DNA of 64,000 nt, taken from assembly GCF_035594765.1 (NCBI RefSeq), contig NW_026943819.1:17596703-17660702 (forward strand), in the 5' to 3' direction. Each line of letters begins with the position of its first letter. Position 1 is the stretch's first letter. Of the stretch, positions 13,393 through 63,946 are shown one piece after another. Below the pieces are notes generated by a model that made no database searches, was not told the DNA's origin, and worked only from the letters and a program-made list of their open reading frames with translations. This stretch comes from Anolis carolinensis (lineage: Eukaryota). The position numbers and the translations under genes are program-made.

Positions 13393-14221
13393 TATATGGA
13401 AACAGTGAGATTTTGCAAGAAGGTAAATTGTCTGGCAGAGAGGAATGAGTGGATTGAGACAGAATTAAAACAAACAGGAAAGGAAAAAATGGGACAAATT
13501 GATTTGCAACTCATATTTTTAATTGAGAGGAGCAAACTAGTCAGTCTTACTTCTGATGAAATGTGTACTTTGTTTTGGTACGTGGGATCCAAGATACACT
13601 TTAGATTTGAGACATCAGAAACAGTTGGCTGGGAATATAAAAGTTTGTCCTGAAAGCCATTTCCTTTCTGTGATGGTACCTTGCCGCAGGCTACAGGGAA
13701 AATGCAAATATGGACAGTGTTGGATAAGAAAACAAGCCTGACCAGAAGTGCAAAAGTATAACTACTAGGACTAGTCCATGCATTTGTTGAAAGCAAATGT
13801 CTTCCATTTGTGTTTTGCTTTCATCTCTTGCTATTTCTTCTTTCCTTATATAAATAGGCTCCCCTTCCTCTCAATGTGATGGATAATATATTTCTCAAAA
13901 CACTAGGAATTGTGGTGAAGATTCTTTTGTTCATCAGATATAGAAAACAATACAGTTCAGGCATAACAACATTCAAGATGAAGAATCAATGAAAAATCCA
14001 TGAATGCTTTGAAACAGGTGGGTTTATTGGCAAACATACCTATGGTGTTTGAATGAAAACCACGCAGGTCATTTCAGTTAGGACTACTACTAGTAGTAGT
14101 AGTAGCAGTAATTATATCTCCCAAAGGAGACTGAGTCAGGATGGATGCACTTTTGTTCCATAGGACCTAATGACATGTTATTCACTGAAAGCAGTCTTCT
14201 CTTGTGTCTCTGTAGAACGAT

Positions 14222-14726
14222 TCACCAGCAACCTGAGGAAAGAATGGATAATTGTTCACAATTACATTTGAAGGTGAGGCAGAGAGTGAGAAAATTACAT
14301 AACTAGCTTGAAAGCAATAATTACTGTTGCCTTTTCCAGAAATGGAGATGTATGATTCATATCCCATTATGATTGCAATGTCACAAGGAATATTATGACC
14401 CCTTTAGCTCTATATTAATAGTATTTTTGGAATGGGCACACTAAATAGTGCAGGAGAAATATCACATGGGGGTTAAATATTTCAATTTTTTGTTGTGGGT
14501 ATTTTATTTAAGGAAACGTTTGGTTTCTCGTGTATTAAACAGATGAAGCTTTAATATACCAATAACAATGAGCCCCTGGTGGCTCAATGGGTTAAACCAG
14601 GGGTCCCCAAACTAAGGCCCGGGGGCCGAATGCAGCCCATCGAAGCCATTTATCCGGCCCCCACGGCACAAGGGCAAAAAGGGGTTGGGCTAAATGATCC
14701 AAGGGATCTCTTCTTCTCTTACAACC

Positions 14727-14784
<58 letters not shown>

Positions 14785-17700
14785 GAGGCTGGGTGGCCAT
14801 CTGTCAGGGGTGCTTTGCTTGTGCTTTCGGTGCACAAAGGCAGAAGGGGATTGAACTCAATGGCCCAAAAAAAAAAACAGGGGCCCAACCCTCTTTTTTA
14901 TTATTATTATTGTTCTTATTATTATTATTATTATTATTAATTATTATTGCTCAGTGGCCAACTATAGTCTGGCCCTCCAACAGTCCGAAGGATCGTGAAC
15001 TGGCCCCCTGTTTAAAAAGTTTGGGGACCCTTGGGTTAAACCCTTGTGCCAGCAGGACTGCTGACCGACAGGTTGACGGTTCAAATCTGAGGAGAGTGGG
15101 TGAGCTCCCCCTGTCAGCTACAGCTCCCAATGCGGGGACATGAGAGAAGCCTCCCACAAGGATGGTAAAACATCAAAAACATCCGGGCGTCCCCTGGGCA
15201 ACATCCTTGCAGACAGCCAATTCTCTCACTCCAGAAGCAACTCCGGTTGCTCCTGACACAAAAAAAAAGTATTATATTGTATAACATTATAATATTATTA
15301 TCAATATTATATGTATATACAATATAATATATTATTTAAAATGATATAAAAATATTAGATTATAAAACTGAGGGTGGGGGCCAGGTAAATGACCTTGGAG
15401 GGCCGCATCCAGCCCCCGGGCCTTAGTTTGGGGACCCCTGGTCTAGGGCTTTAAAGGTCATAACCTTTAATGCTACATAGCTAAGGACTTTATCAGAAAG
15501 GCCAGGCGAAGCATCCTGCTTTGTCTGGCTTCTGGCAAGGAAAAAGGGTGCAGTGGGGTTAATTGTCACCCCATATTCAGCTCCCTATCACAGTGCTTTC
15601 CCCATCACACGGGAAAGCATTGCCATCAAAGGGAAACCTTCTGTGTTGGTGTATAAGCATTTGGCGATGCTTTCATCCCAGTTGGGAGCGTGGCAGATGT
15701 CACAAGATGTGGCGTCGGCCTCCATCCCCCAGAAGGAGGCTGATTTCAGCCAATCTGATGAGTTCATAAGTATGCGTAATATTATGCAATGTAGGCCATG
15801 ATAGAGACCTTTAGCCATTAACAACACAACCTGTGGATGATTTATTTTTACCTTACCTCCACACTTTGAAAGACATTCATCCTGTGTCAAAAAGTTATTT
15901 GCATTGCCTCCACAGCCACCATAAATGAACTTCTCACATTGCCCACTTTTGATGTCAAAGTAGAAACGAGGCATGGCTGCGTAACAAAATCCAACGTATG
16001 GTGGAAGTCTGCATATGAAAGAAGAACTGGATTCCCCTAGAAAGGCGAGAAAGGAAAGCAAGAACTTGTACAAGTTCAACTGTATTTATTTATTATTTAT
16101 TTACAGCATTTATATTCCACCCTTCTCACCCCGAAGGGGACTCAGGGCAGATCACATTGCACACATAAAGGCAAACATTCAATGCCATAACAGAACAGAG
16201 ACAGAGACAAGAAGCAGGCACGGGCTGGCCTCGAACTCATGACCTCTTGGTCAGAGTGATTTGTTGCAGTTGGCTTGCTTTCCAGCCTGCACCACAGCCC
16301 GGCCCAGATTACAGCACTATAAAACTGCAGCTCATGAGAAGAGGGATGAAGAAAGGAATATGACGGCACCTTCAGGTTTAAATAATAATTTATTTCCTTA
16401 TAAATTTCCATACAGTACAGCCTTCTTCAGAGACTGTAGGACAATGATGGGCAAGCTTTTGAGCTTGGTGTGTCAAAATTTACCAAACAATCTAGCATGA
16501 CTTGGGTGGTGTGTCACTTCGACACACATATGTATAGTTTAAATAACAAAAATGTATAATTGTAATATGTAACTGTATTTAATAAATCAAAAACTATTTA
16601 CTACCCTTATTTCCATGTACAACGATCTATGGTACCTCTTGCGGTTTCCACACTGATTTCTCTCTATTCTAGTTTCAATGTAGTCATGAATAATGAATAT
16701 TATAATAGTAATAATATGATAATATACTACAATAATAATAGAATAATAATAGAATGATATAATAATAATCTCTCTCTATATATATGTAATATGCATAATT
16801 CGCATGGAGTAAACAACAAAACCACTGGACCAAATCACACCAAATTTGGCCACAAAAGACATAGTCATCCAATCAATCTGCAGGCAGCAGCGTGTCAGCA
16901 AAAATGGCTAGGCGTGTCAGTGTTGACACACGTGTCATAGATTGGCCATCACTGCTGTAGGATAAGGGTAGGGTTTTTTTGAGATATTAGTTTCACATTG
17001 GGTGGTGTCGGAGGCAAGGAGTGGGGGATCTCTCCTGAAGATCTCAGGGCCCAGGCACGTTCATACAAGGGGATGCAGTTGGCCAAAAAACCTGGACCTG
17101 GACCATCTAGGACTTTAAAGGTCATAACCTTTAAAGCTACAGAGCTAACAATCTTATCAGAAAGGCCAGGTGAAGCGTATCATTTCCCCTGGTTTCTGGT
17201 GAGGAAAGAGGAAGCAGTTGGGTGAATCTGTCACCCTGCGCTCAGCTCCCTCTCGCAATGCTTTTTAAATCACATGGCGAAAGCGTTGCCCTTGAGAGGA
17301 GGCCTCTCATGTCGGGGTGAAATCGTTTGGCGATGCTTTCATCCTGGGTAGGGGTGTGGCCGATGCCAGATGTCACACGACATGGTTTGATGTCCGGCAT
17401 CGGCCTCCATCCCCTAGATGGGGTGAAAGCGTCTTAAAACACTGATTTCACCCCATCCGAAGAGTTCGTAAATATGCGTAATATTATGCAATGTAGGCTA
17501 TAATTGAGACCTTTAGCCATTAACAACACAACCTGTGTATGATTTATTTTTGCCTTACCTCCACACTTCGAAAAGCATTCATCCCGTGTTAAAAAGTTAT
17601 TTGCATTGCCTCCACAGCCACCATAAATGAACTTCTCACATTGCCCACTTTTGATGTCAAAGTAGAAACGAGGCATGGCTGCGTAACAAAATCCAACGTA

Positions 17701-19782
17701 TGGTGGAAGTCTGCATATGGAAGTGGACTTCCCTATAAAGGAGAGAAAGGAAAGCAAGAACTTGTACAAGTTGAGCTGTTGATAACAGCACTATAAAACT
17801 GCAGCTCATGAGAAGAGAGAAGAGGGAAGGAATATGATGGCACCAAGACTAAATAATTTATTTCCATACAAATGACCATTCAAGACTTTTTCAGAGACTG
17901 GAAAAATATGGGATTTGAGGGTGCTATTTTGAGACTTACGACAGTTAAATACCTTGATAGCACCAGAACTCATTTGCTATTGAAGACTGCCAGGGAATAA
18001 CAAGTGCAACAGCCTATATTCAGGAGGAAGGTGATTCCATACTCCCGCCGAGTACTACTTGCCACAGAAGACCTTATGAAATCGAAGGAATATACATTTT
18101 AATATTATTTTATGACTTCAGTCAATGGGTGTACCACAGTGTACAATTAATGCAGTTTGACACTACTGTAACTGCCATGGTTCAATGTGATGGAATTCAG
18201 AGAAATTTAGTTTAACAAAGTCTTTACTCTGCCAAAGAGCCCTGGTTTTCACCAAACTACAAGTCCCAGGACTTTGTAGTACTGAGCCATGACAGTCACA
18301 GTGGTGTGTATGCATTAAGTATACAGTGTAGATGAACCCTTGAAGATGGTGTTTTCCATCTGTGCAATGCTAGCATCTGTACAATATTATACACCAAACA
18401 TTCCAGCAAGGTTTATGAGTCTCCTGCAATGGGTTTAATCTTAATCTATATATATAAAAGGGTAATGAAATTTCGGCCTAGGACAAAACAACAAAACTAC
18501 ACATCCCAGAAACACTAAACTTGGCAGCACAACCCCTCATCCATGCCTCTACGTTCATACAACAAAAAGAAAAGAAAAATAAAGTCCTAATTAGAGGGAG
18601 AGGAATAATTGTTTTTATCCAATTGCTGCCAGTTAGAAGGCTAAACTCCGCCCACTTGGTCTCCTAGCAACCCAATCAGCCCAGGGGACAGGCAGAGTTA
18701 GGCCTCACTTAGGCCTCTTCCACACTGCCCATAAAATACAGATTATCTCATTTTAACTGGATTATACGGCAGTGTAGACTCAAGGCCCTTCCACACAGCT
18801 ATATAACCCATTTATAATGGACTTAATGTAAGGTAAAACCTTTACCCTTTACCTTAACTACCAGCAATTCCTCTATACTTTATTTCCCATACCACCATAC
18901 TTCGCCACAGCAACGCGTGGCTGGGCACAGCTAGTATAACATATTTTAGTAGTTTATCTACTGATGGACAGGAAATGTATTCAGAGGTAGTTGTGCTAGC
19001 CATTATCTGAACAAATCTGAAACCTTTGATGACATTACGGAAATATTCATTCTTGCAAATAGAGTAGACGAGGGAATTTCATCAGGTGCCGGTTGTCACA
19101 TAATCCAGGCAATAATACAGTGATAGCATAATAGGTTTTCTTCCACGTCTTTTACATTGATGACTCTTTGTATGTATTTGCTGTGTTTCATTGTCTGTTT
19201 CTTACGTAGCCTGTTAGCTTATTCAGAACACTTTTTCCATACATTTTAACCTCAACATGTTTTCAACAGATGCCAACAAGATATATGGGAATAATATGGG
19301 GAAGTTGGATTTGGTTTCGCAAGTCAGAGCTGAATGACAACCTAGAATCATATAAGCATAGAATAGTAGAGTTGGAAGAAACCTCATGGGCCATCCAGCC
19401 CAACCCCCTGCCAAGAAGCAGGAAATCGCATTCAAAGCACCCCCGACAGATGGCCATTCAACCTGTTCTTGCCATCAACCTAGCACAATATTCAATTTTC
19501 CCCTTTCTATTCTATTCTCACCAATTTTGCAAGGGGGGCAAATGGCAAACAGAGGCTAACAAAGATAATGCTCTTACCAAAATCATGGCAATAGGCATCC
19601 AGTGGTCCAAACCAGGAGACCAGAAATACCATAGGAAGGAGGACAAGGAGGACAATATGATTGGCAAACAAGCATTCAAACTTAGCAAAGATGGTGCTCT
19701 TACCTTCATCATAGGCATCCAGTGGTCCAAACAAGGAGACCAGAAGAAGGAGGACGAGGAGGAGAATATGATTATACATCAT
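14222..19782 (-). CDS. Kunitz gene C1, predicted bi-Kunitz protein of about 147 aa. Exons 19782-19704, 17732-17559, 16036-15857, 14232-14222
   Basis: Signal peptide [26 protein letters not shown] then GTAAGA; two intact 6-Cys exons (174 and 180 nt), both GFCYAAMPR (P1 Tyr); candidate terminal exon tttcctcAG then GCW*, with AATAAA at 14023-14028. Confidence 0.75.
14570..15270 (+). mobile_element. SINE2-like element interrupted by a hAT MITE at 14598-15033
   Basis: MITE TIR CAGGGGTCCCCAAACT with 8-bp TSD GGTTAAAC; SINE halves match 3153-3425. Confidence 0.8.
16085..16305 (-). mobile_element. tRNA-headed SINE with (TAAA)n tail
   Basis: GAGTTCGAGGCC B-box-like motif; second copy at 45692-45915; absent from paralogous introns. 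Confidence 0.6.
16442..16954. mobile_element. hAT non-autonomous element
   Basis: TIR CA(A/G)TGATGG, perfect 8-bp TSD CTGTAGGA; inverted relative at 57881-58495. Confidence 0.8.
18445..18934 (+). mobile_element. Helitron-like element
   Basis: A|TC ... hairpin, CTAG|T. Confidence 0.75.
19345..19460 (-). mobile_element. CR1 3' tail fragment
   Basis: Matches 11080-11190. Confidence 0.75.
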
Positions 19783-19814
19783 TTTGATGCGAATGCCCGA
19801 TGTTGAATAAAGCT

Positions 19815-19885
19815 ACTTTTTAAAGTCTTACATAGGGAAATGTAGGTAGAACAATTAGTCAACAAGTAAGGACATTGTGGCGTTG
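19815..19885 (-). promoter_or_regulatory. Family C promoter with TTTAAAA TATA-like box; paralogues at about 32225, 47678, 56005 and 62247
   Basis: Same position relative to ATG as the family A TATAAA; shares GGAAA and AGAACAATTAGT motifs. Confidence 0.55.
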
Positions 19886-20761
19886 GTCTGCTTACTTCAG
19901 AGTAACTCCCTGTTCTGCAATAAGTACTATTCCGTTCAAACTAGGGTTGAATTGGAGCCATAAAGCCAATTAGCATCATCTGGACCCAACCAGGAAGAGA
20001 TTAATTCCTAGGATATGGCATTGATACAAGCATTATATTTTGTCATACATATAAGTATAATCAGGCCTGTAGCCGGGGGAGGGTGTGTTAGGGGTTCAAA
20101 CCACTCCCAACATTTTTCAGGTTAAAATCCTTGGTTTACTCATGGATTTCAACTGGTTAACCAATCCTCATGCTACGTCTATGAGAAGCAAAAATGAAGA
20201 GTCCCTTCAGAACTGCAAGCACAATCTCAAGCAAATTTTGACAAATTATTCACCTACCTTTCCACCAATTTACATTGCAAAAGCAACAATTGCAGCATTA
20301 GCCGATATACTGGAAGCCACCAATTTGGCCCACCCACAACTGGCAGGCAAAGCCTAAGATGCAGGGGAAAATGTGAAGGTGCTCACAAAAGAGACCAGAC
20401 TTGGTGGGGGCAGTTGACAGGGGCAGAGCTGCAGGATATTTAAAGTTGTTCCACCTCCCTGCTATGCTTTTTGCTTTAGCTTGAGGTAGGAGGCAGGCTC
20501 CTAATGAGGAATGAGAACTTTTCCTCCTTGCTCCCTCCACTCCCCTTTTCCAGAGGACAATGGGGTTCTCTTTGCTATATCTTTGCCCCAGGAATTCACA
20601 CTACAATCTGGGAAGTTTCTGCCCTTTTCGTTTATTGGCAGGGATTTCCCAGTACAGCATAAGGGTTGGAGGTTTGGGTGGCTACACTACACTACATAAA
20701 AAGATCTGTCAAGGCAGTGGCATTGTCTCATTCATCATTAAGCTCTTTCGGTGGCAATATG

Positions 20762-25318: not shown

Positions 25319-26347
25319 TTGCCCAGTCAGATTAATCAAGCACAACTTTTTTAAAACCTTTGATTATAGTTTTAAAACTTTCCTATTGGAAAAGTTTGAC
25401 CATTTTTGAGGTCTTCAAACTAGTCACAACACAAGTCTTACCACTTCATCACATAACGGAGTTCTACACTTAAAATCTGCTATTCCACTGGGTCCACTAC
25501 ATTCATTTTGGTTAAAGTGCAGTTTTTGAGTCGTTTAAACGTTGAGGGCAGCATTATTTTCCAACGCATCAGGAAGAGGGGAGGAAATGAGTTTTTCCCA
25601 AAACTCAGGATATTTTTCCCAATTTCGAATGAATTAGCACTCGTTGCTCTCAGGTTAGAATCACACAATTTGTGGGAGGAGAGATTGGGGGCGGAGTCAA
25701 AATAAACTTTTTTTGGGAAATTTCCTTTTGTTCCCCAAACAGGAAGGCTATCTATTGTAAGCCATCTCATAACGCTTCTATTTTGCAAAAAAATAAAATA
25801 GCCTTTTAGGGTATCTTTCCCTTTCCTTCCATGATGTTTCTGTGTCCTGTGTTGGGAGGGCCAGTGCTGCTGCGCTTCCAAATGGGATTCCCTTCCATCC
25901 CTTTTCTCTCTCTCGCCCTCTCTGCTGTTGGGAATTGTGGGAGTTGAAGTACTGAAAAGCACCGAGAGGGATGGTGGATGGAGCCAAATGTCTGCAGTGT
26001 GGAAACCTCTTCATTGAAATATACGCAAGACAACTGAGTGCACTAAACAGTGTGATTGTAAGGTAGGGAAAAACTCCTTTTTATTATGGAATGGAGTTAG
26101 ACAGAAGTCTCTTCTTCTGAACACTTCTGAACACTTCCCAGCGTAATCGGATGAAGTCCAGAAAACAGCATGAATGGCAAACATTCGTTTTTTATCTTCT
26201 TTAGGATCGGTTGATATCACCAATGGAGAAACTGCTTAGATGCATAGGCCAGACGAATGGACATGATGATCAGAGGTGTTGGATTTGTTACTCCTCTGCG
26301 CCTATAAGGTTAATGTCCATTTCTGAAAAATACGAAAAAGCTTTGTT

Positions 26348-26552
26348 TTATTTCTTACCAAATCTGCACATCTGGAGGCATTCTATCACCGAATGAAAGT
26401 TATTGTCATTGCCTCCACAACCGTTATAAATGAACAGTTGACGTGTCTTATTCTCAGCATCATAATAATAGCGAGGAAATATCCATTGCAAAATCCCTCT
26501 GAATTAGGGAGTGTACATAATTTTGGGAAAGATCCAGGGTGGGGGGGACATC
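26348..26552 (-). pseudogene. B-type Kunitz exon, frameshifted
   Basis: Acceptor at 26553-26554 and donor at 26358 give 194 nt (1 nt short of 195); T-run deletion after GFCNGY; Cys30 changed to Arg; AATAAA at 26080-26085. Confidence 0.75.
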
Positions 26553-32190: not shown

Positions 32191-32565
32191 TTTGATGTGA
32201 ATGCCCGATGTTGAATAAAGCTACTTTTTAAAGGCTTCCATAGGGAAATGTAGGTAGAACAATTAGTCAACAGATAAGAACATTGTGGAGTTGGTCTGCT
32301 TACTTCAGAGTAACTCCCTGTTCTGCAATAAGTACTATTCCGTTCCACTGGGGCTGAATTGGAGCCATAAAGCCAATGAGCATCATCTGGACCCGGCCAG
32401 GAAGAGATTGATCCCTATGATACGGCATTGATACAAGCATTATATTTTGTCATGCATATAGGCGTAATCAGGCCTGTAGCTGGGAGGGAGTTGGTGGTTC
32501 AAACCACCCACAAAATTTTTCAGATTAAAATCCTTGGTTTACTCATGAATTTTAACTGGTTAAAC

Positions 32566-36572: not shown

Positions 36573-36871
36573 CTGTAGAAGGATTGTAGGACACAAAGGT
36601 AGGCTCACACAGCTTGGAGCTATGGAAAACTTTATTGAATCCGCCTTGCCAAGATGATCACATAGCTTATACTGCCCCTCTTCCGCTCGTCCCCCAGTAT
36701 ATCAAGTTGCTTCTTCCCTCCCCCTCTCACGTTTCTCCTTCCCCATTCACACCTCCCCGCCAACTGTCCTCTCCCACGTTTGAAAACCAGAGCAGGTCAT
36801 AAATCAGTCTTCCCAAATGGTCTTCCTCATCCGTTTCTTTGCCCCCCTTTGCTCTGGTCGGATGTGAAATG

Positions 36872-45600: not shown

Positions 45601-47643
45601 CCGTATTTCAAAGAAAAACAGTAAGCTAATTCTGTAAGTGCATAAGTAGGTTCAACAAAAATAATATGGTATCAACAATAACTTTATAATATTTATTATT
45701 TATTATTTACAGCATTTATATTCCGCCCTTCTCACCCCGAAGGGGACTCAGGGCGGATCACATTACACATATAGGCAAACATTCAATGCCTTTTAACATA
45801 GAACAAAGACAGACAAACATAGGCTCTGAGTGGGCCTCGAACTCATGACCTCCTGGTCAGAGTGATTCATTGCAGTGATTCATTGCAGCTGCTCTCCAGC
45901 CTGCGCCACAGCCCGAGCCCTTGTTTGCAATTAATAATATTAATCATTATCATCATCAATAACAACAACAACTTCCTTTGTATCCTGCTCTATTTATCTC
46001 CCCATGGGGACTCAGGCCGGCTTCCAACATAGTAACAGGCAAACATTCAGTGCCTATATAAACAATGCAGGGCTAGATATAGCTCTATAATTATATATAC
46101 TAATTTCACATTTGCATTTCCCCCCTGAAAAGTTTGCAAATCCTCTCTATGTGCATTTCCCTCCTGCAATATTTGCAAGTCCCATTTATCTATGTTTACA
46201 TCTATCTAGACATCTGTGTGTGTGTGTGTGTGTGCATATTTAAATGGCCTATATCTACATTAATATCTATCTATCTAGACATTGCTCTCTATATAGAGAA
46301 TTATATCTTTATAGGACTTGCAGAGATTTGCAAACATATGAGGGGAAAATTCATATATTAAATTAATGTATTTGTAGGGGGAAACCTATATATTATTTAC
46401 AAGCTTTGGGGCATGCATTTGCCCAAGGAAGAAATGCAAGCAAAGCCCTCCTAAAAACAACTTTGGCCTCTTTTCTCCTCCCCTTTCCCACCTCTTTTAT
46501 TTATCCCTTTTCAAACTCTAAAAGTAGCCAGAAAAGGCTTTTTAAAACTTCCCTTCCTCTCTCAAAAACCCACCCCATTTTTGTTTCCGTAGGAATAATA
46601 AGAAATGCACACCTTCTGTTGCTCTTCTTTCCCTCCTTCCCTCCCTATTGACACAAACGTTCTTGCAATAATAGTAATAATAATAATAAATCCTGCAAAT
46701 TTGCAAGAGTCTTTCTCCCCCCCCCCCCCCCCGCCTTTACACCCATGCAATATTTTTCTTCTTCCTGGCTTGCAAGAGGCTCTCACTCACTCTCCTTTCG
46801 CTTTTAAAAACATTCCCTCCTTGTCCCTCTCTCTCTTAAAAAATAAGATAACTCCAGCCTGGAAGGAGAAGCGGAGAAGGGAGATTTTGGAAAAGAAAAC
46901 ATACTGTGGCCTCCAGGCTCCGCTGCCTGGCTTGACCTTGACCCGATTATAAGCCGGGGGAGGCTATCTTCGAGTATATACGGTAATAATTCATTTCCAT
47001 TCACTCCTGACAACAGCTTTCTTCAAAGACTAAAAGATTATGGGATACCCTAATGGGACCAGAACTCATTTGCTTTTGAAGACTGCCAGGGAATACCAAG
47101 TGCAGCAACCTATATTCAGGAAGAAGGTGATGCCAACCCCCCTCCGAGTATTTCTTGCCACAGAAAATCCTATGAAATTCATAGGCTTGGTATACATTGG
47201 AAGGTAAATGGAAGGAATATACATTTTAATATTATGTTATGACTTCAGTCAACGTGTGTACCACAGTGTACAATTAATGCAGTTTGACACTAATGAAACT
47301 GCCATGGCTCAAGGTGATGGAATTTGGAGAGTTTTAGATCGACAAGGTCTCACCAAACTACAAATCCCAGGACTTCTTAGTACTGAGCCATGATAGTCAA
47401 AGTGGTGTCTTGCTGAATGAAAACTGTTTTTGCCGTCAACCTAGCAGAATATTCAGTATTCCCCTTTCTGTTCCATTCTCACTTATTTTGCAAGGGGAGG
47501 GGGGGCGCACAAATGGCAAACAAGCATTCAAACTTAGCAAAGATTGTGCTCTTACCTTCATCATAGGCATCCAGTGGTCCAAACCAGGAGACCAGAAATC
47601 CCATAAGAAGGAGGACGAGGAGGAGAATATGATCATACATCAT
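36872..47643 (-). CDS. Kunitz gene C3, predicted bi-Kunitz protein of about 153 aa. Exons 47643-47556, 45273-45106, 38664-38497, 36909-36872
   Basis: Signal peptide [29 protein letters not shown]; exon GLCRAAFHR (6 Cys); exon [15 protein letters not shown] (5 Cys); candidate terminal exon ctccctacAG then [12 protein letters not shown], with AATAAA at 36631-36636. Confidence 0.65.
37108..37221 (-). pseudogene. B-type Kunitz exon remnant
   Basis: [33 protein letters not shown]; 5' half lost at the MITE starting 37222; Cys55 region disrupted. Confidence 0.8.
37560..38045. mobile_element. Truncated hAT MITE
   Basis: One TIR (AGTTTGGGGACCCCTG) and internal sequence matching 62644-63346. Confidence 0.6.
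38830..44940 (+). mobile_element. Decayed L1/Tx1-clade LINE ORF2 with nested Helitron (40553-41030), Tc1-like element (41550-44281) and MITE (44589-44911)
   Basis: [36 protein letters not shown]-terminal CWKC..H..C; stops and frameshifts; AATAAA plus A tail at about 44918-44941. Confidence 0.85.
41550..44281. mobile_element. Tc1/mariner non-autonomous element with nested Helitron at 42150-43612
   Basis: C(C/T)GTATATACT TIRs with TA TSD; the sister copy at 45397-46983 shows the Helitron empty site GAATTA|TATCTT. Confidence 0.8.
45397..46983. mobile_element. Tc1/mariner non-autonomous element in C3 intron 1, with nested SINE at 45692-45915
   Basis: TIRs, TA TSD, colinear with 41550-44281. Confidence 0.8.
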
Positions 47644-49346: not shown

Positions 49347-50333
49347 TTGAATCATAGAATCATAGAATCGTAGAGTTGGAAGAGACCTCATGGGCCATCC
49401 AGTCCAACCCCCTGCCAAGAAGCAGGAAATCGCATTCAAAGCACCCCCGACAGATGGCCATCCAGCCTCTGCTTAAAAGCCTCCAAGGAAGGAGCCTCCA
49501 CCACAGTCCAGGGCAGAGAGTTCCACTGCCGAACAGCCCTCACAGTGAGGAAGTTCTTCCTGATGTTCAGGTGGAATCTCCTTTCCTGTAGTTTGAAGCC
49601 ATTGTTCCGTGTCCTAGTCTGCAGGGCAGCAGAAAACAAGCTTGCTCCCTCCTCCCTATGACTTCCCCTCACATATTTGTACATGGCTATCATGTCTCCT
49701 CTCAGCCTTCTCTTCTGCAGGCTAAACATGCCTAGTTCTTTAAGCCGCTCCTCATAGGGCTTGTTCTCCAGACCCTTAATCATTTTAGTCGCCCTCCTCT
49801 GGACGCTTTCCAGCTTGTCAACATCTCCCTTCAATTGCGGTGCACAGAATTGGACACAGTGTGATTCCAGGTGTGGTCTGACCAAGGCAGAATAGAGGGG
49901 GAGCAGGACTTCCCTGGATCTAGATGCTATTCCCCTATTGATGCAGGCCAGAATCCCGTTGGCTTTTTTAGCAGTCGCATCACATTGTTGGCTCATATTT
50001 AACTTGTTGTCCACGAGGACTCCAAGATCTTTTTCACATGTGTCGAGCCAGGCGTATCTTTGCATTACATTTAATCTGCCTAAGTGGAGTATCTTGCATT
50101 TGTCCCTGTTGAACTTCATTTTGTTAGTTTCAGCCCATCTCTCTAGTCTGTCAAGATCGTTTTGCATCCTGCTCCTGTCTTCTGGAGTGTTGGCTATCCT
50201 TCCCAGTTTGGTGTCATCTGCAAACTTGATGATCGTGCCTTCTAGCCCTTCATCCAAGTCGTTAATAAAGATGTTGAACAGAACCGGGCCCAGGACGGAG
50301 CCCTGTGGCACTCCACTCATGACTTCTTTCCAA
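49347..50333 (-). mobile_element. CR1 LINE, 5'-truncated
   Basis: ORF 49436-50320 with [10 protein letters not shown] and FADD; CATAGAAT tail; empty site at about 13560. Confidence 0.93.
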
Positions 50334-50834
50334 ATGCGTATTTTGGTTTGTTACATGCAATTCAGGATTTGAGACCTAAGAAACAGTTGGCTGGGGAAGA
50401 AAGATGCTATATAGGAGTCTTTCCTAAAAGCCATTTCCTTTCTGTGATGGTACCTTGCTGCAGGGGAAAATACAAATATGGACTATCAATATAAATAAAA
50501 ATGTAATGCCCGTTTGTGGGGCTCTCATATCTCCCAAACTACTTCAACGATTGCTATGAAATTTGGATACAATGTACCTTCGAATTGATGAGTGTTTTAA
50601 GGTATTCACATACCAACTATCACAAACATGTCACACCTGAGACAGGTAAAACTATGCCCCTTAGCAACAGCACTAGCAACGGCCAAACAATCTCCTCTCT
50701 TTAGCATCTGACATGGACAGGGCCGCAAGGGACAGCTAGGCCTGCCTCCTCGCTATTCAATTTGGCATGGCGAGTTACGCAAAGCCGGGGCTCAGTGGCC
50801 TAGCCACTGAAAGAAGGGATAATGACCATTGTTC

Positions 50835-51420
50835 TGTCACGCGCTGGGCCTGTAACTGATTGTCTATTATATAGGACGTACACTTTACGCCCAGCGGGAA
50901 GCCAGGGTGCCTAAAGAAAGGTTGTTGAGGATTTCCTTGAAAAGATGGCCTCTGAGTCTTTAAAGAAATAACAAAGTCTTTATTGACGAACAAATAATAA
51001 ATCTTCAAGGAGTCTTGTCCCCAAGGGACAGGCGATTGGCTTTGAATAACTGTGAAAACCCTCTTATAACCTCTCCCAGGCTGTCTATTATCTGGGCCTA
51101 GCTGATCTGGGACCCACTGCCGACTCCAAATGCGTCTGGGTGTCGAGTGGACCTACCAGCCAAGGCTTGCAGATGTTTCTGTGCTGCTGTTCTGTATCCC
51201 CGGACGGTCTTGAAATATGAAGCTTTTCTACGGGACGAACTGGTCTACATCCTATAGCTGAGCTTCCTAAGTGAGACTAACTTAAAAATGGCTCCTTCCC
51301 TCCCAGAGCCCTGAGCAAGGGGCGGAACCAAACTTAATGGTGATCGACAGGTGGCCTGTCCTATGATTGCAAACACTTGCAGAAAGAAAATAAAATTGGA
51401 GCTTTCTGGTACAGCTGTAC
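50835..51420 (-). mobile_element. LTR-like repeat, inverted copy of 11730-12335
   Basis: Direct sequence match. Confidence 0.55.
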
Positions 51421-52255
51421 CAGCACAACCATGAAAATCCTTTTCGTGGGCACCAGCGAGGTGAGTGAGAGAAACCACTACTGAACAGACTAGAGGAGGT
51501 TGGGAAGAATTCGCCATGATTTACAGGAGTTGTAGGGACTGGCATGTATAGTTCATCTACAATCTAAGACCAATGATGGACCTGAAACTAACTTGGTACA
51601 CAGACCCAACATGGCCAAATGTACATACTGCCAGGGTTTGGGTGTGATTGACCTTGACATCCAGGAGTCATAGTTCACCCGTATTCAGAGAACACTTCTC
51701 TCTCGCTCTCCCTCTCTGCTATTGGAAATTGTGGGAGTTGTAGTCCAAAACACTAGCTGAGCCTTTGCTGCTGCCCTTCCAAATGAGATTCCCTTCCATC
51801 CTTTTTTTCTCTCGCTCTCTCTGCTGTTGGGAATTGTGGGAGTTGAAGTACTGAAAAGCACTGAGAGGGATGGTGGATGGGGCCAAATGTCTGCAGTGTG
51901 GAAACCTCTTCATTGAAAAATACGCAAGACAAGTGACTGCACTGAACAGTGTGATTGTAAGGTAGGGAAAAACTCCTTTTTATTATGGAATGGAGTTAGA
52001 CGGAAGTCTTTTCTTCTGAACACTTCCAGGCGTAATCTGATGAAGTTCAGAAAACAGCATGAATGGCAATCATTAGTTTTTTATCTTTAAAATTCTTTAG
52101 GATCGGTCGATATCACCAATGGAGAAACTGCTTCATTTGCATCAAAGATGCATAGGCCAGACGAATGGACATGATGATCAGAGGTGTTGGATTTGTTAGT
52201 CCACTGCGCCTATAAAGTTAATCTTTAGTTCTGAAAAATACCAAAAAGCTTTGTT

Positions 52256-52460
52256 TTATTTCTTACCAAATCTGCACGTCTGAAGGCATTCTCTCACTGA
52301 ATGAAAGTTATTATCATTTCCTCCACAACCGTTATAAATGAATAGTTGACATGTCTTATTCTCAGCATTATAATAATAGTGAGGAAAATATCCATTGCAA
52401 AATCCCTCTGAATTAGGGAGTGTACTTAATTTTGGGAAAGATCCTGGGTGGGGGGACGTC
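52256..52460 (-). pseudogene. B-type Kunitz exon, out of phase at the acceptor, Cys5 changed to Ser
   Basis: 194 nt between AG at 52461-52462 and GT at 52266; C-run 1 nt shorter than in the 26.5 kb copy; AATAAA at 51979-51984. Confidence 0.7.
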
Positions 52461-53517
52461 CTAAAAGGGTGGAAGATGGGAAACACAACAACAAAATCTA
52501 TGGTATCATTTATACAAATTTCAGTCTCATAGCAGAAGAGTTTCTGTCATGGCAAAATAGTTTTTCATAGAATTCGGTTAGAGAATTTGGTTAGAGAGAG
52601 GGGAGGGGAGGTATGTTTGGGAATTATGTGGTATGAGGCATATCTGCTAACATTTCAGTGATGATAACCAACCATGTGTGACCAAGCACCAATACTTTGT
52701 GATCAAGATGGAAAAAGTTATTAATGAAGAAGAGCTCACAAGCTAGGAGAGAAAAGGGAGAGTGTCCTCCATTGTAAAGGTATTCACTTGCGGGCAGCTT
52801 AGGGCACATTGGGGGTCTTAGGTGCAGTTGAATTTAAAAGGACTGATAGCAATCATATTGGTTAATCCAAAGATAATAGGCACATTGTAAAACTAGTTGA
52901 TCTGAAGTGTCTAATGTAATCAGGAATATAGCAATAGGATTCAGACCTTAGTGGTAGGGGATTTGCTTCTTCTGCCTCCCAAGCCATTTACACTGAGCAG
53001 TTTTGCAATAACTCTTTCCAGAGTGGATTTACTTTTCAAGTGCTAGATTCTTCTCACTTCCTATTGTCAACCTTGAGTAATTTGTAAGTTGTAACTTGGG
53101 GAGCCCCGGTGGTGAAGTGTGTTAAAGCACTGAGCTGCTGAACTTGCAGACCGAAAGGTTGCAGGTTCAAATCCCGGGAGCGGAGTGAGCACCTGCTATT
53201 AGCTCCAGCTTCTGCCAACCTAGCAGTTCGAAAAACATGCCAATGTGAGTAGATCAACAGTTTTGCAATAACTCTTTCCGAAATTAGTTTACACTTTTCA
53301 AGTGCTGGATTCTTCTCATTTCCTGTTGTCAACTTTGAGTACCCCCAAGTTGTAACTTGGGGACTGCCTTTACACATATTCAGCCAAGGGCTGCTGTCAC
53401 GTTACTGCTTTTGAGAAACAACCAATTTCACATCAACCCCAATGCACAAAAGGATGTTATGTACATTGATTACATTTCTCAGCTTCACAATACAAGGTTT
53501 CTAAACATCTCTGCTAC

Positions 53518-53561
<44 letters not shown>

Positions 53562-54120
53562 TTGACACAAAGACATAGTATGACACAGCAAACGAGATAT
53601 ATATGCTGGATTTCGTATTGCAAAACCACAAATTGAACAATTCCCAAGTGTATACTCTGTAATGTATTTTTGGATGATGCATGCAGATCCCAGTAAGGTG
53701 GCCTTTCTGTGTTGGGGTGAAAGTATTTGGCGATGCTTTCATCCTGGTTGGAGGCACGGCCGACAGCAGATGTCACACAAGGTGGTGTTTTGTCCAGCGT
53801 CAGCCTCCATCCCCCAGAAGGGATGAAAGCGTCCTAGGATGCTGATCTCACCCCGTCTGATTTTTAAGTATGTGTAATAGTATGCAATATAGGCCATGAT
53901 GGAGACCTTTAGCCATTAAAAACAAAACCTGTGGATGATTTATTTTTACCTTACCTATACACTTTGAAACACATTCATCCTGTGTTAAAAAGTTATTTGC
54001 ATTTCCTCCGCAGCCACCATAAAGGAAACCCTCACATTGCCCAGTTTCGATGTCAAAGTAAAAACGATGCAAGGATCTTCTGCTGTGATTTTACATGCTT
54101 TCAATGATGTTTTATACTGT

Positions 54121-54169
<49 letters not shown>

Positions 54170-54443
54170 GCAGCTCTGGCATAAACCAGTACAGGCGGGC
54201 CCAGTGATAATTGGCACACTTGGTGCCGTGCCAAAAGATCTCAGCCGGCATTTGGAAACAATAAACATTCACAAAATTTCCATCCATCAACTGCAAAAGG
54301 CCACCTTACTGGGTTATGCATGCATCATTTGAAAATATATCACACAGTCCTAAACACTTGAGAAGTGTTTGACTCGTGATTTTGTAATATGAAATCCAGC
54401 ATATATATCTCATTTGCTGTGTCATACTATGTCTTTGTGTCAA

Positions 54444-54490
<47 letters not shown>

Positions 54491-55969
54491 GTAGCAGAGA
54501 TGTTTAGAAACCTTGTATAGTGAAGCTGAGAAATGTAATCAATGTACATCACATCCTTTTGTGCATTGGGGTTGATGTGAAATTGGTTGTCTCTGTAAAG
54601 CAGTAACATGACAGCAGCCCTTGCTGAATATGTGTAAAGGAAGTCCCCAAGTTAGGTAAAGGTAAAGGTTTCCCCTGACGTTAAGTCCAGTCATGTCTGA
54701 CTCTGGGGGTTGGTGCTCATCTCCATTTCTAAGCCAAAGAGCCGGCGTTGTCCGTAGATACCTCCAAGGTCATGTGGCCGGCATGACTGCATGGAGCGCC
54801 TTTACCTTCCCGCTGGAGTGGTACCTATTGATCTACTCACATTTGCATGTTTTCGAACTGCTAGGTTGGCAGGAAAAAAGGTAAAGGTTTCCCCTGACGT
54901 TAAGTCCAGTCATGTCTGATTTGTAAGCAAGTGTAATATTATGCAATATAGGCCATGATGGAGACCTTTAGCCATTAACAACAAAACCTGTGGATGATTT
55001 ATGTTTACCTTACCTTCACACTTTGTAACACAGTCATCCTCTGTTAAAAAGTTATTTGCATTTCCTCCGCAGCCACCATAAAAGAAAATCTCACATTGCC
55101 ACCTATTGGTGTCAAAGTAAAAACGAGGGAAGGATGCTTTACAACGTCCAATTTTCTTTGGAAGCTTGCATACGGGATCCACTAGAAAGGAGAGAAAGGA
55201 AAGCAAGAATTTGTACAAGTTCAACTGTAGATTACAACATTATAAAACTGCAGCCCAGGAGAAGAGGGAAGGGGAAGGAATATGACAGCACTTCCCAGTC
55301 TAAATAATAATTTATTTCCATATAAATTTCCATGCGCTCCTGACAACAGCCTTCTTCAAAGAGTGAAAGATTATGGGATACCTTAATGGGATCAGAACTT
55401 ATTTGCTATTGAAAACGGCCAGGGAATATCAAGTGAAGCAACCTATATTAAGGAGGAAGGTGATGCCAAACCCCCTCCGAGTACTTCTGGCCACAGAAAA
55501 TCCTATGAAATTAATAGGCTTGGTATACATTGGAAGGTAAACGGAAGGAATATACATTTTAGTATTATGTTATGACTTCAGTCAAGGGGTGTACCGCAGT
55601 GTACAATTAATGCAGTTTGACACTAATGAAACTGCCATGGCTCAAGGAGAGTTTTAGATTGACAAAGTCTCACCAAACTACAAATCCTAGGACTTCTTAG
55701 TACTGAGCCATGATAGCCAAAGTGGTGTCTTGCTGAATAAAAACCTGTTTTTGCCATCAACCTAGCATAATATTCAGTATTCCCCTTTCTGTTCAATTCT
55801 CACTTACTTTGCAAGGGGGGGTTGGGGCGCAAATGGCAAACAAGCATTCAAACATAGCAAAAATGGTGCTCTTACGATTATCATAGCGATAGGCATCCAG
55901 TGGTCCAAACCAGGAGAACAGAAATCCCATAAGAACGAGGATGAGGAGGAGAATATGATTATATATCAT
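52426..55969 (-). CDS. Kunitz gene C4, single domain with P1 Lys, about 98 aa. Exons 55969-55876, 55181-55014, probable terminal 52460-52426
   Basis: Signal peptide [31 protein letters not shown]; 168-nt exon [34 protein letters not shown]; splicing into the B exon gives [11 protein letters not shown]. Confidence 0.72.
53955..54081 (-). pseudogene. 5'-truncated Kunitz exon, paralogue of 30305-30138
   Basis: [36 protein letters not shown]; acceptor half replaced by an inverted segment. Confidence 0.8.
54655..54919 (-). mobile_element. Sauria SINE 3' part plus a duplicated tail of about 40 nt, within an inverted segment
   Basis: Reverse complement of 27290-27512; 54880-54919 repeats 54661-54700. 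Confidence 0.75.
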
Positions 55970-57323
55970 TTTTGATGTGAATGCCCGATGTTGAATAAAG
56001 CTACTTTTTAAAGGCTTCCATAGGGAAATATAGGTAGAACAATTAGTCAACAAGTAAGGACATTGTGGAGTTGGTCTGCTTACTTCAGAGTAACTCCCTG
56101 TTCTGCAATAAGTACTATTACGTTCCACTGGGGCTGAATTGGAGCCATAAAGCCAATGAGCATCATCTGGACCTGGCCAGGAAGAGATTAATTCCTATGA
56201 TATGGCATTGATACAAGCATTATATTTTGTCATGCAAATAGGTGTAATCAGGCCTGTAGCTGGGAGGGAGTTGGTGGTTCAAAACACCCCCAAAATTTTT
56301 CACATTAAAATCCTTGGTTTATTCATGGATTTTAACTGGTTAAACAAATCCCCATGCTAAGTCTACGAGAAGCTAAAATGAAGAGTCCCTCCAGATCTGC
56401 AAGCATAATCTCAAGCAAAAGTTGACACATTATTCACACTGTCATTACCTACCTTTCCACCAATTTACATTGAAATAGCAACAATGGCAGCAATAGCCGA
56501 TATACAGTAGAGTCTGTCTTATCCAACATAAATGGGACGGCAGAATGTTGGATAAGCGAATATGTTGGATAATAAGGAGAGATTAAGGAAAAGCCTATTA
56601 AACATCAAATTAGGTTATGATTTTACAAATTAAGCACCAAAACATCATGTTATACAACAAATTTGACAGAAAAAGTAGTTCAATACACAGTAATGCTATG
56701 TAGTAATTACTGTATTTATTAATTTGGCACCAAAATATCACAATGTATTGAAAACATTGACTACAAAAATGTGTTGGATAATCCAGAACGTTGGATAAGC
56801 GAATGTTGGATAAGTGAGACTCTACTGTACTGGAAGCAACAAATTTGGCCCACCTGCAACTGGCAGGCAAAGCCTAAGGCCGAGGGGAAAATTTAAAGGT
56901 GTTCACAAAAGAGACCAGACTTGGTGGGGGCAGTTGACAGGGGCAGAGCTGCAGGATATTTAAGGTTGCTCCATTTTCAAATACCAACAACTAATTTTAA
57001 AATAACATGTAATCATTTCCAACTTATAGCAACCCTAGAACCTGCCACATGATTTTCTGGGGCTGAGAATGTGTAGTTCACCCAATATTCCATGACTGAA
57101 CAGGAAATTGAACCCTGGACTCTGAAGTCATAGTCCAATGCTCAAGCCAATGCGTTATTCTGGGGGAAAGCACATGCATTGGCACTGAGCTGGTGAAATG
57201 CAGGGGCAACTGAATGTGTGATGATATATACAGAGGGACTAAACATGGAGTAATGATTCTCAGCCTGGTCAGGAATCTATAGCACTGTAAAATGAATATA
57301 ATTTGACACGACTTTGCCAGCCA

Positions 57324-60307: not shown

Positions 60308-61261
60308 CTGTGGATGGAAGAAAGAAAATCTGTCAGATGGGAACAATGGCATCGAATGTTCTGAATTTCAGTAGCCATTAAAAAAAGATACTGAGATTAG
60401 AAACACAACTATCTTCTCAACTGTCATCCTGAGTTCATTTATCTGATAGTAAGCCCCACTGCACTCACTGGGGCTTCTTTTACCATAAAGCTGTATGCGA
60501 TCCTGCTATCCCAGTGCTAAACTGTTGGAGTGCAGCTATGCTCTACACAATGGTCCTAAAGATACTAGAGGTTGTGGAGTAAGAACCTAACAGAGAAGTG
60601 ACACATTTATTTCTAGATGTGGAGAAAGCCTTTGATTATGTTCATTGGGAGTTTATAGAAAAAGTACTTGCTCATTATGGGGCAGGTCAGCAATTAAAAG
60701 AACAGTCTGTAATGTTTACTCTTTAAAATTGGTCTTACAATTACCTTTTTTCAGGCAAGATGGTACCCTACCCTGGCCCATAGAAGCATTGACAATTGGC
60801 CAACCCCCCTCCAAGGTTTTGGAAAAGGGAAAATGAGAATGCTAAAGAATGCTAATCCTCCCTCAGTGGGATTAGATCAGCCCCTTCCCTCCTGTCATTT
60901 TGCAAACAAGTAAAAACTTGGCTTTGGGAGCAAACATTTGGCCCAGCATAATTATCTGTACAATATAGTTAGAACTGGCTTTGAATTGATGAATATAATT
61001 ATCTGATTATCTGGCTTTGGATCTATGCACAACAGTCGTCTGATGTCTACATATGTTGTTTTAATGTTGTCTTAAATTGTTGTTTAATTGCCTTTAATGT
61101 TGTTGTTTGGGCATGGAATAATGCCACTCATTTAAGCCACTCTTCGGGGTGAGAAGGGTGGGGTATAAATGTCATAAATAAATAAACCGAAGAGAAAAAT
61201 TATTAGAGTACTGTATATCCAAATGGCCAAGCTATCCAATAGCATTCGGGAAGGAAGCAAA

Positions 61262-62212
61262 GCATAAATTAAATTATCACATTGCCCACTTATGATGTCA
61301 AAGTAGAAACGAGGAAGTTCTTCATGACAAAGTCTAGTGTTTTCTGGATGTCCGCATTTGGAAGTGGACTTCCCTATAAAGGAGAGAAAGGAAAGCAAGA
61401 ACTTGTACAAGTTGAGCTGTAGATGACAGCACTATAAAACTGCAGCTCATGAGAAGAGGGAAGAGGGAAGGAATATGACAGTACCAAGACTAAATAATTA
61501 ATTTCCATACAAATTACTATGCATGCCAGCCTTTTTCAGAGACTGGAAAATTATGGGATTTGAGGGTGCTATTTTGTGGCTTACAGAATTTTAATTCCTC
61601 GATAGCACCAGAACTCATTTGCTATTGAAGACTGCCAGGGAATACCAAGTGCAACAGCCTATATTCAGGAGCAAGATGATGCCAAACTCCCTCTGAGTAC
61701 TTCTTGCCACAGAAAACCCTATGAAATTCATAGGGTTGGTATACATTAGAAGGTAAATAGAAGGAATGTACATTTTAATATTATTTTATGACTTCAGTCA
61801 ATGGGTGTACCACAGTGTATAATTAATGCACTGACACTACTGTAACTTCCATGGCTCAATGTGATGGAATTTGGAGAGTTTAGTTTGACAAGCTCTTTAC
61901 TCTGCAAAAGAGCCCTGGTGCTCACCAAACTACAAATCCCAGGACTTCTTAGTACTGAGCCATGACAGTCAAAGTGGTGTCAAGTTGAATGACAACACAT
62001 TTTTTGCCATCAACCTAGCACAATCTTCATCTTTCCCCTTCCTATTCCATTCTCACCTATTTTGCAAGGTGGGCAAATGGCAAACAGAGCCATTCAAACC
62101 TAACAAAGATGGTGCTCTTACCTAAATCATAGTGATAGGCATACAGTGGTCCAAACCAGGAGACCAGAAATCCCATAGGAAGGAGGAGGAGGACAATTTG
62201 ATTATACATCAT
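61262..62212 (-). pseudogene. Kunitz gene C5: intact signal exon 62212-62122 and truncated Kunitz exon 61373 to about 61262
   Basis: [30 protein letters not shown]; exon CGHPENTRLCHEELPRFYFDIISGQCDNLIYA, after which homology ends (no GGC.GN motif, no donor). Confidence 0.75.
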
Positions 62213-62643
62213 CTTTGATGTGAATGCCCAATGTTGAATAAATCTACTTTTTAAAGTCTTACATGAGGAAATGTAGGTAGAACAATTAGTTAACAAGTAA
62301 GGACATTGTGGAGTTGGTCTGTTTACTTCAGAGTAACTCCCTGTTTTGCAATAAGTATTATTACGTTCATTTAGGGCTAAATTGGAGCCATAAAGGAAGC
62401 AAAGAAGACTTTGTTAGGAAATGAGGCTATCTAGAAAGGAAGACAAAAATATACTTTAAAGTAGTTGCAAGGGGAATTTATTAATGTAGGATAAGGGTAG
62501 GGTTTTTTTTGAGATATTAGTTTCACACTGCGTGGTGTCGGAGGCAAAGAGTGGGGGAACCTCTCCTGAAGATCTCGGGGCCCGGGCATGTTCATACAAG
62601 GGGGTGCGGTTGACCAAAAAGCCTGGACCTGAACCATCTAGGA

Positions 62644-63346
62644 CAGGGGTCCCCAAACTTTTTAAGCAGAGGGCCGGTCCACAATCTTTCAGACTGCTGA
62701 GGGGCCGAATTATCATTTTAAAAAAATACAAACAAATTCCTATGCATACTGCACATGTCTTATTTGTAGTGCAACAACAACAACAACAAAAGAACAATAC
62801 AATATTTAAAAATGAAAACAATTTTAACCAACATAAACCTATTAGGATTTCAATGGGAAGTGTGGGCCTGCTACTGGCCAATGAGATAGTCAAGTTAATT
62901 AGGATTGTTGTTGTTGTTGTGTGCCTTCAAGTCATGTCAGACTTTGGCCGAGCCTAAGTCTAAAATTAATTATTTATTTACTGCATTTATCTACTACATT
63001 TATATCCCACCCTTCTCACCCCGAAGGGGACTCAGAGCAGCTGTATGTACATACAATATATTATATTATTAGCATAACACAATATTAGCATTATATATTA
63101 CTATATTGAACTATACCACTATAGTATTATATAATATGTAATATATAACATATAATTAATATTATTATATGGTTTTACTATTAGTATTATATTGTATAAC
63201 GTAAGATTATTATCGATATTATATGTATATACAATATATTATATTATTAAAACTGATATAAAAATATTATATTATAAAACTGAGGGCCAGGTAAATGACC
63301 TTGGAGGGCCGCATCCGGCCCCCGGGCCTTAGTTTGGGGAACCCTG
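62644..63346. mobile_element. hAT non-autonomous element
   Basis: TIRs, TSD ATCTAGGA, empty site at about 17105. Confidence 0.82.
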
Positions 63347-63772
63347 ATCTAGGACTTTAAAGGTCATAACCTTTAAAACTACATAACTAACGACCTTAAC
63401 AGAAAGGCCAGGCGAAGCGTATCACTTTCCCTGGTTTCTGCCGAGGAAAGAGGGAGCAGCGGGGTGAATCTCTGCGCTCAGCTCCCTCTCGCAATGCTTT
63501 CGACATCACATGGTGAAAGTGTTGCCCTTGAGGGGAGGCCTCGCATGATGGGGTGAAATCGTTTTGTTATGCTTTCATCCTGGGTAGGGGTGAGTCCGAT
63601 GCCAGATGTTACACAACGTGGTGTGATGTCCGGCGTCGGCCTCCGTCCTAAGACACTGATTTCACCCCATCTGATGAGTTCGTAAGTATGCGTAATATTA
63701 TGCAATGTAGGCCATAATGGAGACCTTTCGCGATTAACAACACAACCTGTGGATGATTTATTTTTACGTTAC

Positions 63773-63946
63773 CTCCACATTTTGAAAAGCATTCATCCCA
63801 TGTTAAAAAGATATTTGCATTGCCTCCGCAGCCACCATAAACGAAATCCTCACATTGCCCACTTTTGATGTCAAAGTAGAAAAGAGGAATGCTTGCTTTA
63901 CAAGGTCCAGTGTCTTTTGGAAGTCTGCATATGGAAGTGGGCTCCC
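63773..63946 (-). CDS. Kunitz exon of gene C6 (signal exon beyond the window), BPTI-like P1 Lys
   Basis: 174-nt exon [40 protein letters not shown]; AG at 63947-63948, GTAACG at 63772. Confidence 0.85.

Follow-up and report, generated by a model that had tools for sequence, protein, structure and literature searches.

A probable birth-and-death array of discrete Kunitz inhibitor genes with diversifying reactive loops in Anolis carolinensis

The 64,000 nt of Anolis carolinensis DNA considered here (the window) carry an array of Kunitz exons, signal-peptide exons and terminal (tail) exons. The initial annotation took this array for a modular locus with many promoters, from which mono- and multi-domain inhibitors are produced combinatorially. 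Does the locus work in this way, or is it a row of separate genes? The evidence favours the second answer. With good probability, the locus is a tandem array that evolves by birth and death and is made up of discrete genes, which encode small secreted serine-protease inhibitors of the Kunitz/BPTI family with loops under positive selection. Loop codons have changed at ~2.3 times the synonymous rate and ~2.7 times the flanking intron rate, and NCBI places four protein-coding genes in the array (98, 153, 93 and 102 aa) with ranges that do not overlap and with ends of the coding sequence (CDS) that equal the exon coordinates found here. The window contains no N and was letter-identical to contig JAWQEF010000008.1 (GCA_035594765.1) over the 5 kb compared.

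A six-frame pattern search and tblastn recovered Kunitz-like exons from the minus strand of the window only, and the order of transcription is from high to low coordinates. The range treated in the initial annotation includes seven splice-competent Kunitz exons of one sequence type (type A), two shortened type-A exons, three decayed exons of a second, distinct sequence type (type B), five signal exons and four tail exons. The Kunitz exons are:

63773-63946, minus strand: K63, intact type-A exon, TGPCKASI (63777-63929), P1 Lys, 174 nt, phase 1-1; in no annotated gene.
61261-61373, minus strand: K61, type-A exon that has lost its 3' end and has no donor; a dead fragment.
55014-55181, minus strand: K55, intact type-A exon, IGRCKASF (55018-55170), P1 Lys, 168 nt, phase 1-1; sole Kunitz domain of P0054.
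53955-54081, minus strand: K53, type-A exon that has lost its 5' end, adjoins an (ATT)n run and has no in-phase acceptor; skipped by the NCBI model.
52267-52443, minus strand: B52, type-B exon, EGFCNGYF (52274-52429), Cys5 replaced by Ser; skipped in P0054.
45106-45273, minus strand: K45, intact type-A exon, TGLCRAAF (45110-45262), P1 Arg, 168 nt; domain 1 of the 153-aa gene.
38497-38664, minus strand: K38, type-A exon, TGRCRRSF (38501-38653), P1 Arg, 168 nt; Cys38 replaced by Arg, five Cys left, splice sites kept.
37129-37245, minus strand: B37, type-B exon with both ends cut off by inserted sequence; dead.
30138-30305, minus strand: K30, intact type-A exon, TGRCRRSL (30142-30294), P1 Arg, 168 nt; sole domain of P0001.
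about 26359-26521, minus strand: B26, type-B exon with a 1-nt frameshift and its in-phase acceptor lost; skipped in P0001.
17559-17732, minus strand: K17, intact type-A exon, VGFCYAAM (17563-17715), P1 Tyr, 174 nt.
15857-16036, minus strand: K15, intact type-A exon, VGFCYAAM (15861-16013), P1 Tyr, 180 nt; domain 2 of P0006.

Each of the 10 exons scanned matched PF00014 (59.7-77 bits against a cut-off of 21; E 1e-16 to 1e-21). The spacing C-x8-C-x15-C-x7-C-x12-C-x3-C, which accounts for three disulfides, is present in six type-A exons and fails in K38, in B52 and in three four-Cys exons located at 107-9458. The P1 residues given above, which follow Cys14, were read from an ungapped alignment in BPTI numbering. 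The closest PDB sequence matches are ordinary Kunitz inhibitors (SmCI, boophilin, TFPI, bikunin, SHPI-1 and textilinin), and the type-A domains are 58-60% identical to Kunitz/WAP proteins of Erythrolamprus. No WAP domain was found on scanning the window, an Rfam scan of its entire length gave no match, and no flanking non-Kunitz gene was seen in the window or in the adjoining loci examined. The word 'toxin' in the NCBI product names is automatic naming by similarity.

At all seven splice-competent type-A exons, a polypyrimidine/AG acceptor lies 2 nt ahead of the first full codon and a GT donor follows after 1 extra nt. The exon lengths of 174, 168, 168, 168, 168, 174 and 180 nt and the phase of 1-1 throughout bear out the initial annotation, in which the intact Kunitz exons were described as symmetric and as multiples of 3. 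The loop strings listed there (VGFCYAAM twice, TGRCRRSL, TGLCRAAF, IGRCKASF, TGPCKASI and EGFCNGYF) are all present, but the EGFCNGYF exon, B52, cannot be counted as intact, as it has lost Cys5 and the first AG available to it as an acceptor is not in phase. The entry for 38501-38653 (K38) likewise has to be corrected for the loss of Cys38.

Rates of change were compared in three phylogenetically independent pairs of type-A exons (K38-K30, K55-K45 and K63-K17), with contact loops defined as BPTI positions 11-19 and 34-39 without the Cys. Because flanks of 250 nt were in part not homologous, local alignments were used in their place, along with 50/95-nt flanks alignable in all copies. Summed over the three pairs, nonsynonymous change in the contact loops amounted to 0.244 per site, as compared with 0.108 for synonymous change (one-sided Fisher p=0.010), 0.091 for the flanking introns (p=6e-5) and 0.120 for nonsynonymous change in the scaffold (p=0.0045). 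Scaffold nonsynonymous and synonymous change did not differ significantly in these pairs. The excess of contact-loop change over both synonymous and intron change supports diversifying selection on the reactive loops, as judged from these alignments. The divergence of exons beyond that of introns and the concentration of amino-acid change in the reactive loops are as the initial annotation had anticipated.

Whole-exon pairwise dN/dS (NG86) was 0.6-2 in most pairs, and pairwise proportions were 0.2-0.55 for contact nonsynonymous, 0.0-0.29 for synonymous and 0.07-0.20 for intron sites. Fitch steps per site on the maximum-likelihood tree came to 0.34 in introns, 0.46-0.62 at third positions, 0.54 at other first and second positions and 1.00 at contact first and second positions (contact versus intron, Mann-Whitney p=9e-5). 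Promoter and signal exon differ by K of 0.04-0.08 where the matching Kunitz exons differ by 0.14-0.25. The exception is the pair K17/K15, the exons of which are 96% identical (dN 0.024, dS 0.10) and carry the same Tyr-P1 loop, and the introns of which are ~18% different. This points to purifying selection, or to conversion limited to the exon, that would hold both heads at Tyr-P1.

The Kunitz exons are accompanied by the following signal exons and tail exons:

62122-62212, minus strand: S1, signal exon with a TATA-like promoter and phase-1 donor; unannotated, with only the shortened K61 downstream.
55876-55969, minus strand: S2, signal exon of the NCBI 98-aa gene P0054.
47556-47643, minus strand: S3, signal exon of the NCBI 153-aa bi-Kunitz gene.
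32112-32190, minus strand: S4, signal exon of the NCBI 93-aa gene P0001.
19704-19782, minus strand: S5, signal exon with the same peptide as S4; in frame with K17, not linked to K17 by NCBI.
51979-52230, minus strand: T52, tail of the S2 gene; phase-1 acceptor 36 nt past the B52 donor, stop 52198-52196, AATAAA 51984-51979.
36631-36909, minus strand: T36, single-copy tail of the S3 gene; phase-1 acceptor, 12-aa tail, stop 36874-36872, AATAAA 36636.
26080-26322, minus strand: T26, tail of the S4 gene, 85% identical to T52; acceptor 26322, stop ends 26288, AATAAA 26085.
14023-14232, minus strand: T14, tail of the K17/K15 gene; phase-1 acceptor, 3-aa tail, stop ends 14222, AATAAA 14028.

As had been noted initially, the signal exons end in phase 1, and they do so in five of five cases at the donor GTAAGAGC. 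Upstream of each of the five, ~200 nt are conserved (K 0.04-0.17) and contain TTTAAAAAG ~42 nt 5' of the ATG; the 'many promoters' of the initial annotation are therefore plausible in sequence. All four tail exons begin in phase 1 and each has its own AATAAA. T14 is single-copy within the window, and a similar tail closes a 272-aa multi-Kunitz gene upstream of the window. The claim of few terminal exons was right in so far as K63, K61, K45 and K17 lack a tail exon of their own, and a T14-like or T26-like tail was not found after K63 or after K61; 'few' is nevertheless overstated, because there is one tail for each of the four annotated genes.

Side observations were made at both ends of the window and near S4. 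Three more Kunitz genes lie outside the array range on the minus strand, with exons at 107-259, 5421-5573 and 9306-9458. Their exons are phase 1-1 and encode four-Cys domains without Cys14 and Cys38 (PF00014, E 1e-16 to 1e-17). Their signal exons are near 1833-1725, about 6400 and about 10440, each with the TATA box cttataaaggg kept; in the middle gene, the donor behind the signal exon is altered. Just upstream of the S4 promoter block, 32662-33244 is an internal tandem repeat with self-matches of 76-79% at offsets of ~50-160 nt. Past the other end of the window, at about 65969-65350, lie the tail exon and AATAAA of the NCBI 272-aa gene, the acceptor context of which is T14-like; the array extends upstream of the window.

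The NCBI models are consistent with discrete genes. P0054 (98 aa) consists of S2, K55 and T52, and P0001 (93 aa) of S4, K30 and T26, with all junctions in phase 1; the K30 exon is 100% identical to NCBI P0001 of Anolis carolinensis. Both fit a three-exon secreted Kunitz gene, with phase-1 introns between the exons for the signal, the Kunitz domain and the short tail. The 153-aa product runs from 47643 to 36872, and lengths of 88+168+168+35 nt fit S3, K45, K38 and T36, a chain that was checked by exon-length arithmetic only. For P0006 (102 aa), the start is a Met inside K17 (17676), and K15 and T14 (acceptor 14232) follow. Exon lengths add up to the 98, 153 and 93 codons, and the joined products P0001, P0006 and P0054 are database entries. 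K63, S1 and K61 are part of no gene, because the NCBI annotation is empty from 65695 to 55969. K63 sits 1.7 kb downstream of the stop codon of the 272-aa gene, and no signal exon was found in the 1970 nt beyond the window end.

Several points weigh against the reading as discrete genes under selection. The selection test covers seven short paralogous exons only, constraint or homogenisation of the intron sequence close to splice sites may have inflated the contrast, and a scaffold omega of ~1.1 is compatible with relaxed constraint too. K38 is left with an unpaired Cys, K63 and S1 are intact yet unannotated, and S5 is not joined to K17 by NCBI. No public assembly contig except the genome encodes P0001 or P0054. 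Finally, no sequencing run listed for the stretch is on record as RNA, and the contigs assembled over 50100-56100 from four of these runs were genome-colinear only, with no joint at the predicted introns. Runs X1 and X4 resemble whole-genome DNA; X6 and X9 are uneven in depth.

Two observations were made on these contigs. Very high-copy interspersed repeats at 53115-53315, 54120-54923 and 50100-50300 break the introns beside K53, with a contig depth of 1e5 to 1e6 in all four runs. A contig from the two uneven-depth runs (51972-52615) follows the genome through T52, B52 and >170 nt of upstream intron with no break where splicing is predicted, and could represent enriched DNA or a transcript left unspliced. 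The end of this contig at 51972 was considered as a poly(A) site and rejected, because a high-copy repeat abuts it.

The explanation that survives best beside discrete selected genes, though an improbable one, is a graveyard of decaying duplicates, in which high dN/dS would reflect relaxed constraint and not adaptation. It would account for the scaffold omega and for the lack of an assembled transcript in the public assemblies searched, and it agrees with the state of the 12 type-A and type-B exons, five of which are broken and two more short of a disulfide Cys. Six exons, however, retain six Cys, the Gly, Tyr, Phe and Asn residues of the scaffold, open frames and both splice sites. Neutrality also predicts otherwise than a contact nonsynonymous change in excess of synonymous and intron change, and neither the low dN of K17/K15 relative to dS, which fits purifying selection, nor the high conservation of the promoters is in keeping with general decay.

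The combinatorial locus of the initial annotation, in which any promoter would read through and its signal exon would be joined to varying Kunitz and tail exons to give many inhibitors, similar to the splicing of clustered variable exons to shared ones at other loci, is very unlikely. In its favour, all donors and acceptors are in phase 1 and every chain would be in frame. The statement that any signal exon is in frame with any downstream Kunitz or tail exon is formally right, and trivial because the introns are uniformly phase 1. Nor are the uniform phases independent coincidences, since the copies go back to a single duplicated ancestor and such phases are generic in Kunitz exons. As a general rule, exons that encode Kunitz modules belong to class 1-1. 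A phase-1 acceptor is also the rule for the Kunitz exon in the mammalian WFDC/SPINT locus, a related one (PMC3209443), and the phase 1-1 symmetry of the anole exons does not speak for combinatorial use.

The intact K63 and the intact promoter and signal exon S1, both without partners of their own, would also suit combinatorial use, as would old Ensembl/UniRef models that chain several Kunitz domains. The latter (P0004-P0010) were rejected as support for multi-domain chains, as intron sequence is translated in these poor models. Against combinatorial use, the four annotated genes share neither tail exon nor AATAAA with one another, no isoform label is attached to the three products (of four) with names known, and no cross-gene joint was seen across predicted exon borders at 50100-56100 in runs not recorded as RNA. 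Variable first exons sharing one downstream set were not found; there are four tails for four genes, and the ranges of these lie apart. Thus, of the mono- and multi-domain products expected initially, mono- and bi-Kunitz proteins are indeed predicted, but as fixed structures in the NCBI models, each annotated gene having its own promoter and tail, and combinatorial production is not supported. It is similarly a long shot that RNA processing, too, exploits the uniform phase 1, with read-through or alternative splicing joining S1, K63, the still-open B52 and exons of neighbours into extra mono-, bi- or tri-Kunitz isoforms; if this were true, the array would be a combinatorial inhibitor generator.

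How the discrete genes may have acquired their present structures can be read from self-similarity within the array. A type-B exon read past its donor gives a stop six codons beyond the last Cys, with AATAAA ~270 nt further, which suggests that the ancestral unit probably consisted of a signal exon, Kunitz A and a terminal Kunitz B. In the S4 and S2 genes, the B domain is damaged and the models splice to an acceptor 36 nt past the B donor, inside the former 3' region. The K53-B52-T52 block (51766-54081) is a copy of a K30-type gene with its 5' end gone; hence the gene formed by S2 and K55 appears to borrow a foreign tail. A further K30-type copy, K38 with B37, is 92.6% identical to the K30 unit, lacks a signal exon and is placed behind S3-K45. 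T36 derives from unique inserted sequence.

In the K17/K15 gene, homology of the native intron 1 of K15 ends at 16436, that of the intron downstream of K17 ends at 17105, and repeat fragments lie between; these breakpoints fit a deletion that fused two single-Kunitz genes. The S5 promoter/signal block (19662-20163) is 92.6% identical to the S4 block (32070-32567), with homology that stops 42 nt into intron 1. The S5 gene would be chimeric, because its Kunitz and tail exons fall in another subgroup than its S4-like promoter and signal exon. Genes with two domains or a borrowed tail have the appearance of deletion fusions, made in the DNA, of the ancestral unit of signal, Kunitz A and Kunitz B/tail. 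Given these cases of copying, fusion and tail borrowing, modular recombination would be recurrent in DNA and kept in frame by the uniform phase 1. An artefact, with old exon differences next to flanks and promoters made uniform by gene conversion or unequal crossing-over, has little chance of being the main cause of the excess of exon over intron divergence: the discordant kinship of S5 (Kunitz exons of the other subgroup, introns 0.23 apart) and the faster change of third codon positions than of introns would agree with it, but conversion tracts that flank a 170-nt exon and leave it untouched in many pairs would again call for selection that holds the exons apart, and the excess of contact-loop dN over dS is found within the exon, independently of introns.

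The birth-and-death array can accordingly be pictured in a few steps. A gene unit would begin with a TATA-like promoter and a signal-peptide exon, continue with one or two Kunitz exons and close with a tail exon and poly(A) signal of its own. From an ancestral signal-Kunitz A-Kunitz B gene, the B domains would have decayed, and an acceptor in the B 3' region would now provide the tail. Deletions and duplications that join neighbouring units would stay in frame because every intron is in phase 1, and the bi-Kunitz genes (K45+K38 and K17+K15) and the borrowed tails probably arose by such joining of DNA. After duplication, the protease-contacting loops, with Lys, Arg or Tyr at P1, would have diverged under positive selection. 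Family knowledge, taken with the rate data, argues for products that act as standard-mechanism inhibitors, with Lys or Arg at P1 directed to trypsin-like proteases and Tyr at P1, in the double-headed K17/K15 protein, to chymotrypsin-like proteases.

The array has close counterparts. Zupunski and Kordis reportedly described accelerated change in the Kunitz exon of snake-venom genes, a trait in common with the anole array. The snake vKUN/ku-wap-fusin genes also share with the anole genes the succession of a signal exon, a single Kunitz exon and a short tail exon and the multi-copy tandem arrays (14-15 vKUN copies in sea snakes; PMC8557462). They differ in that the anole is not known as venomous and in that the window has no WAP exon, and the likeness is one of layout and sequence only. 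The proposal of a snake-venom-like layout and a diversifying locus in a non-venomous lizard is supported to this extent. According to Hargreaves et al. (bioRxiv 10.1101/006031), lizard and snake Kunitz genes are expressed in several tissues and form no venom-specific clade.

On bovine chromosome 13, the CTI, PTI (BPTI), STI and TKDP1-5 genes represent a tandem expansion of three-exon Kunitz genes that is specific to the lineage; non-coding regions are conserved, transposable elements drove rearrangement and new exons were recruited (PMC3426482). Exon recruitment is common to both loci, as T36 comes from inserted sequence and T26 and T52 from the 3' region of a decayed exon. In the TKDP genes, however, the exons gained encode N-domains, whereas gain and loss in the anole concern Kunitz and tail exons, and the expansions are independent; no ELP/CTI orthologue was found in the anole (PMC3426482). 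The mammalian WFDC/SPINT3-5 genes (human 20q13) have a signal exon, a variable exon 2 with a phase-1 acceptor and an exon 3 with the 3' end, and resemble the anole genes in encoding small secreted single-Kunitz proteins with a fast-evolving middle exon between conserved outer exons (PMC3209443). They are epididymis-specific, and the three recombinant proteins tested inhibited none of the proteases assayed. Bikunin, TFPI/TFPI2 and boophilin also combine two Kunitz domains in one secreted chain, each on its own phase 1-1 exon, whereas the anole bi-Kunitz genes are recent paralogous fusions and the second domain of one of them, K38, lacks Cys38. A separate observation concerns P0012, a protein of 263 aa labelled as from a Planctomycetota metagenome bin, which has 63% identity to a lizard Kunitz domain and may represent contamination or an acquired animal-like multi-Kunitz gene.

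The array is an ordinary, already annotated case, since the Kunitz family is well known for phase 1-1 exons and for hypervariable reactive sites, and loop change that outpaces introns is already known from snake-venom and mammalian Kunitz clusters. The gain is incremental, because the genes are already in RefSeq and the principles are established. What it adds is a non-venomous iguanian lizard among the taxa with tandem Kunitz genes diversifying at reactive loops, and a clear illustration that, where all introns are in phase 1, deletions can fuse neighbours into double-headed inhibitors and recruit new tails. It also bears on the question of whether snake-venom Kunitz toxins were recruited from an already fast-evolving locus.

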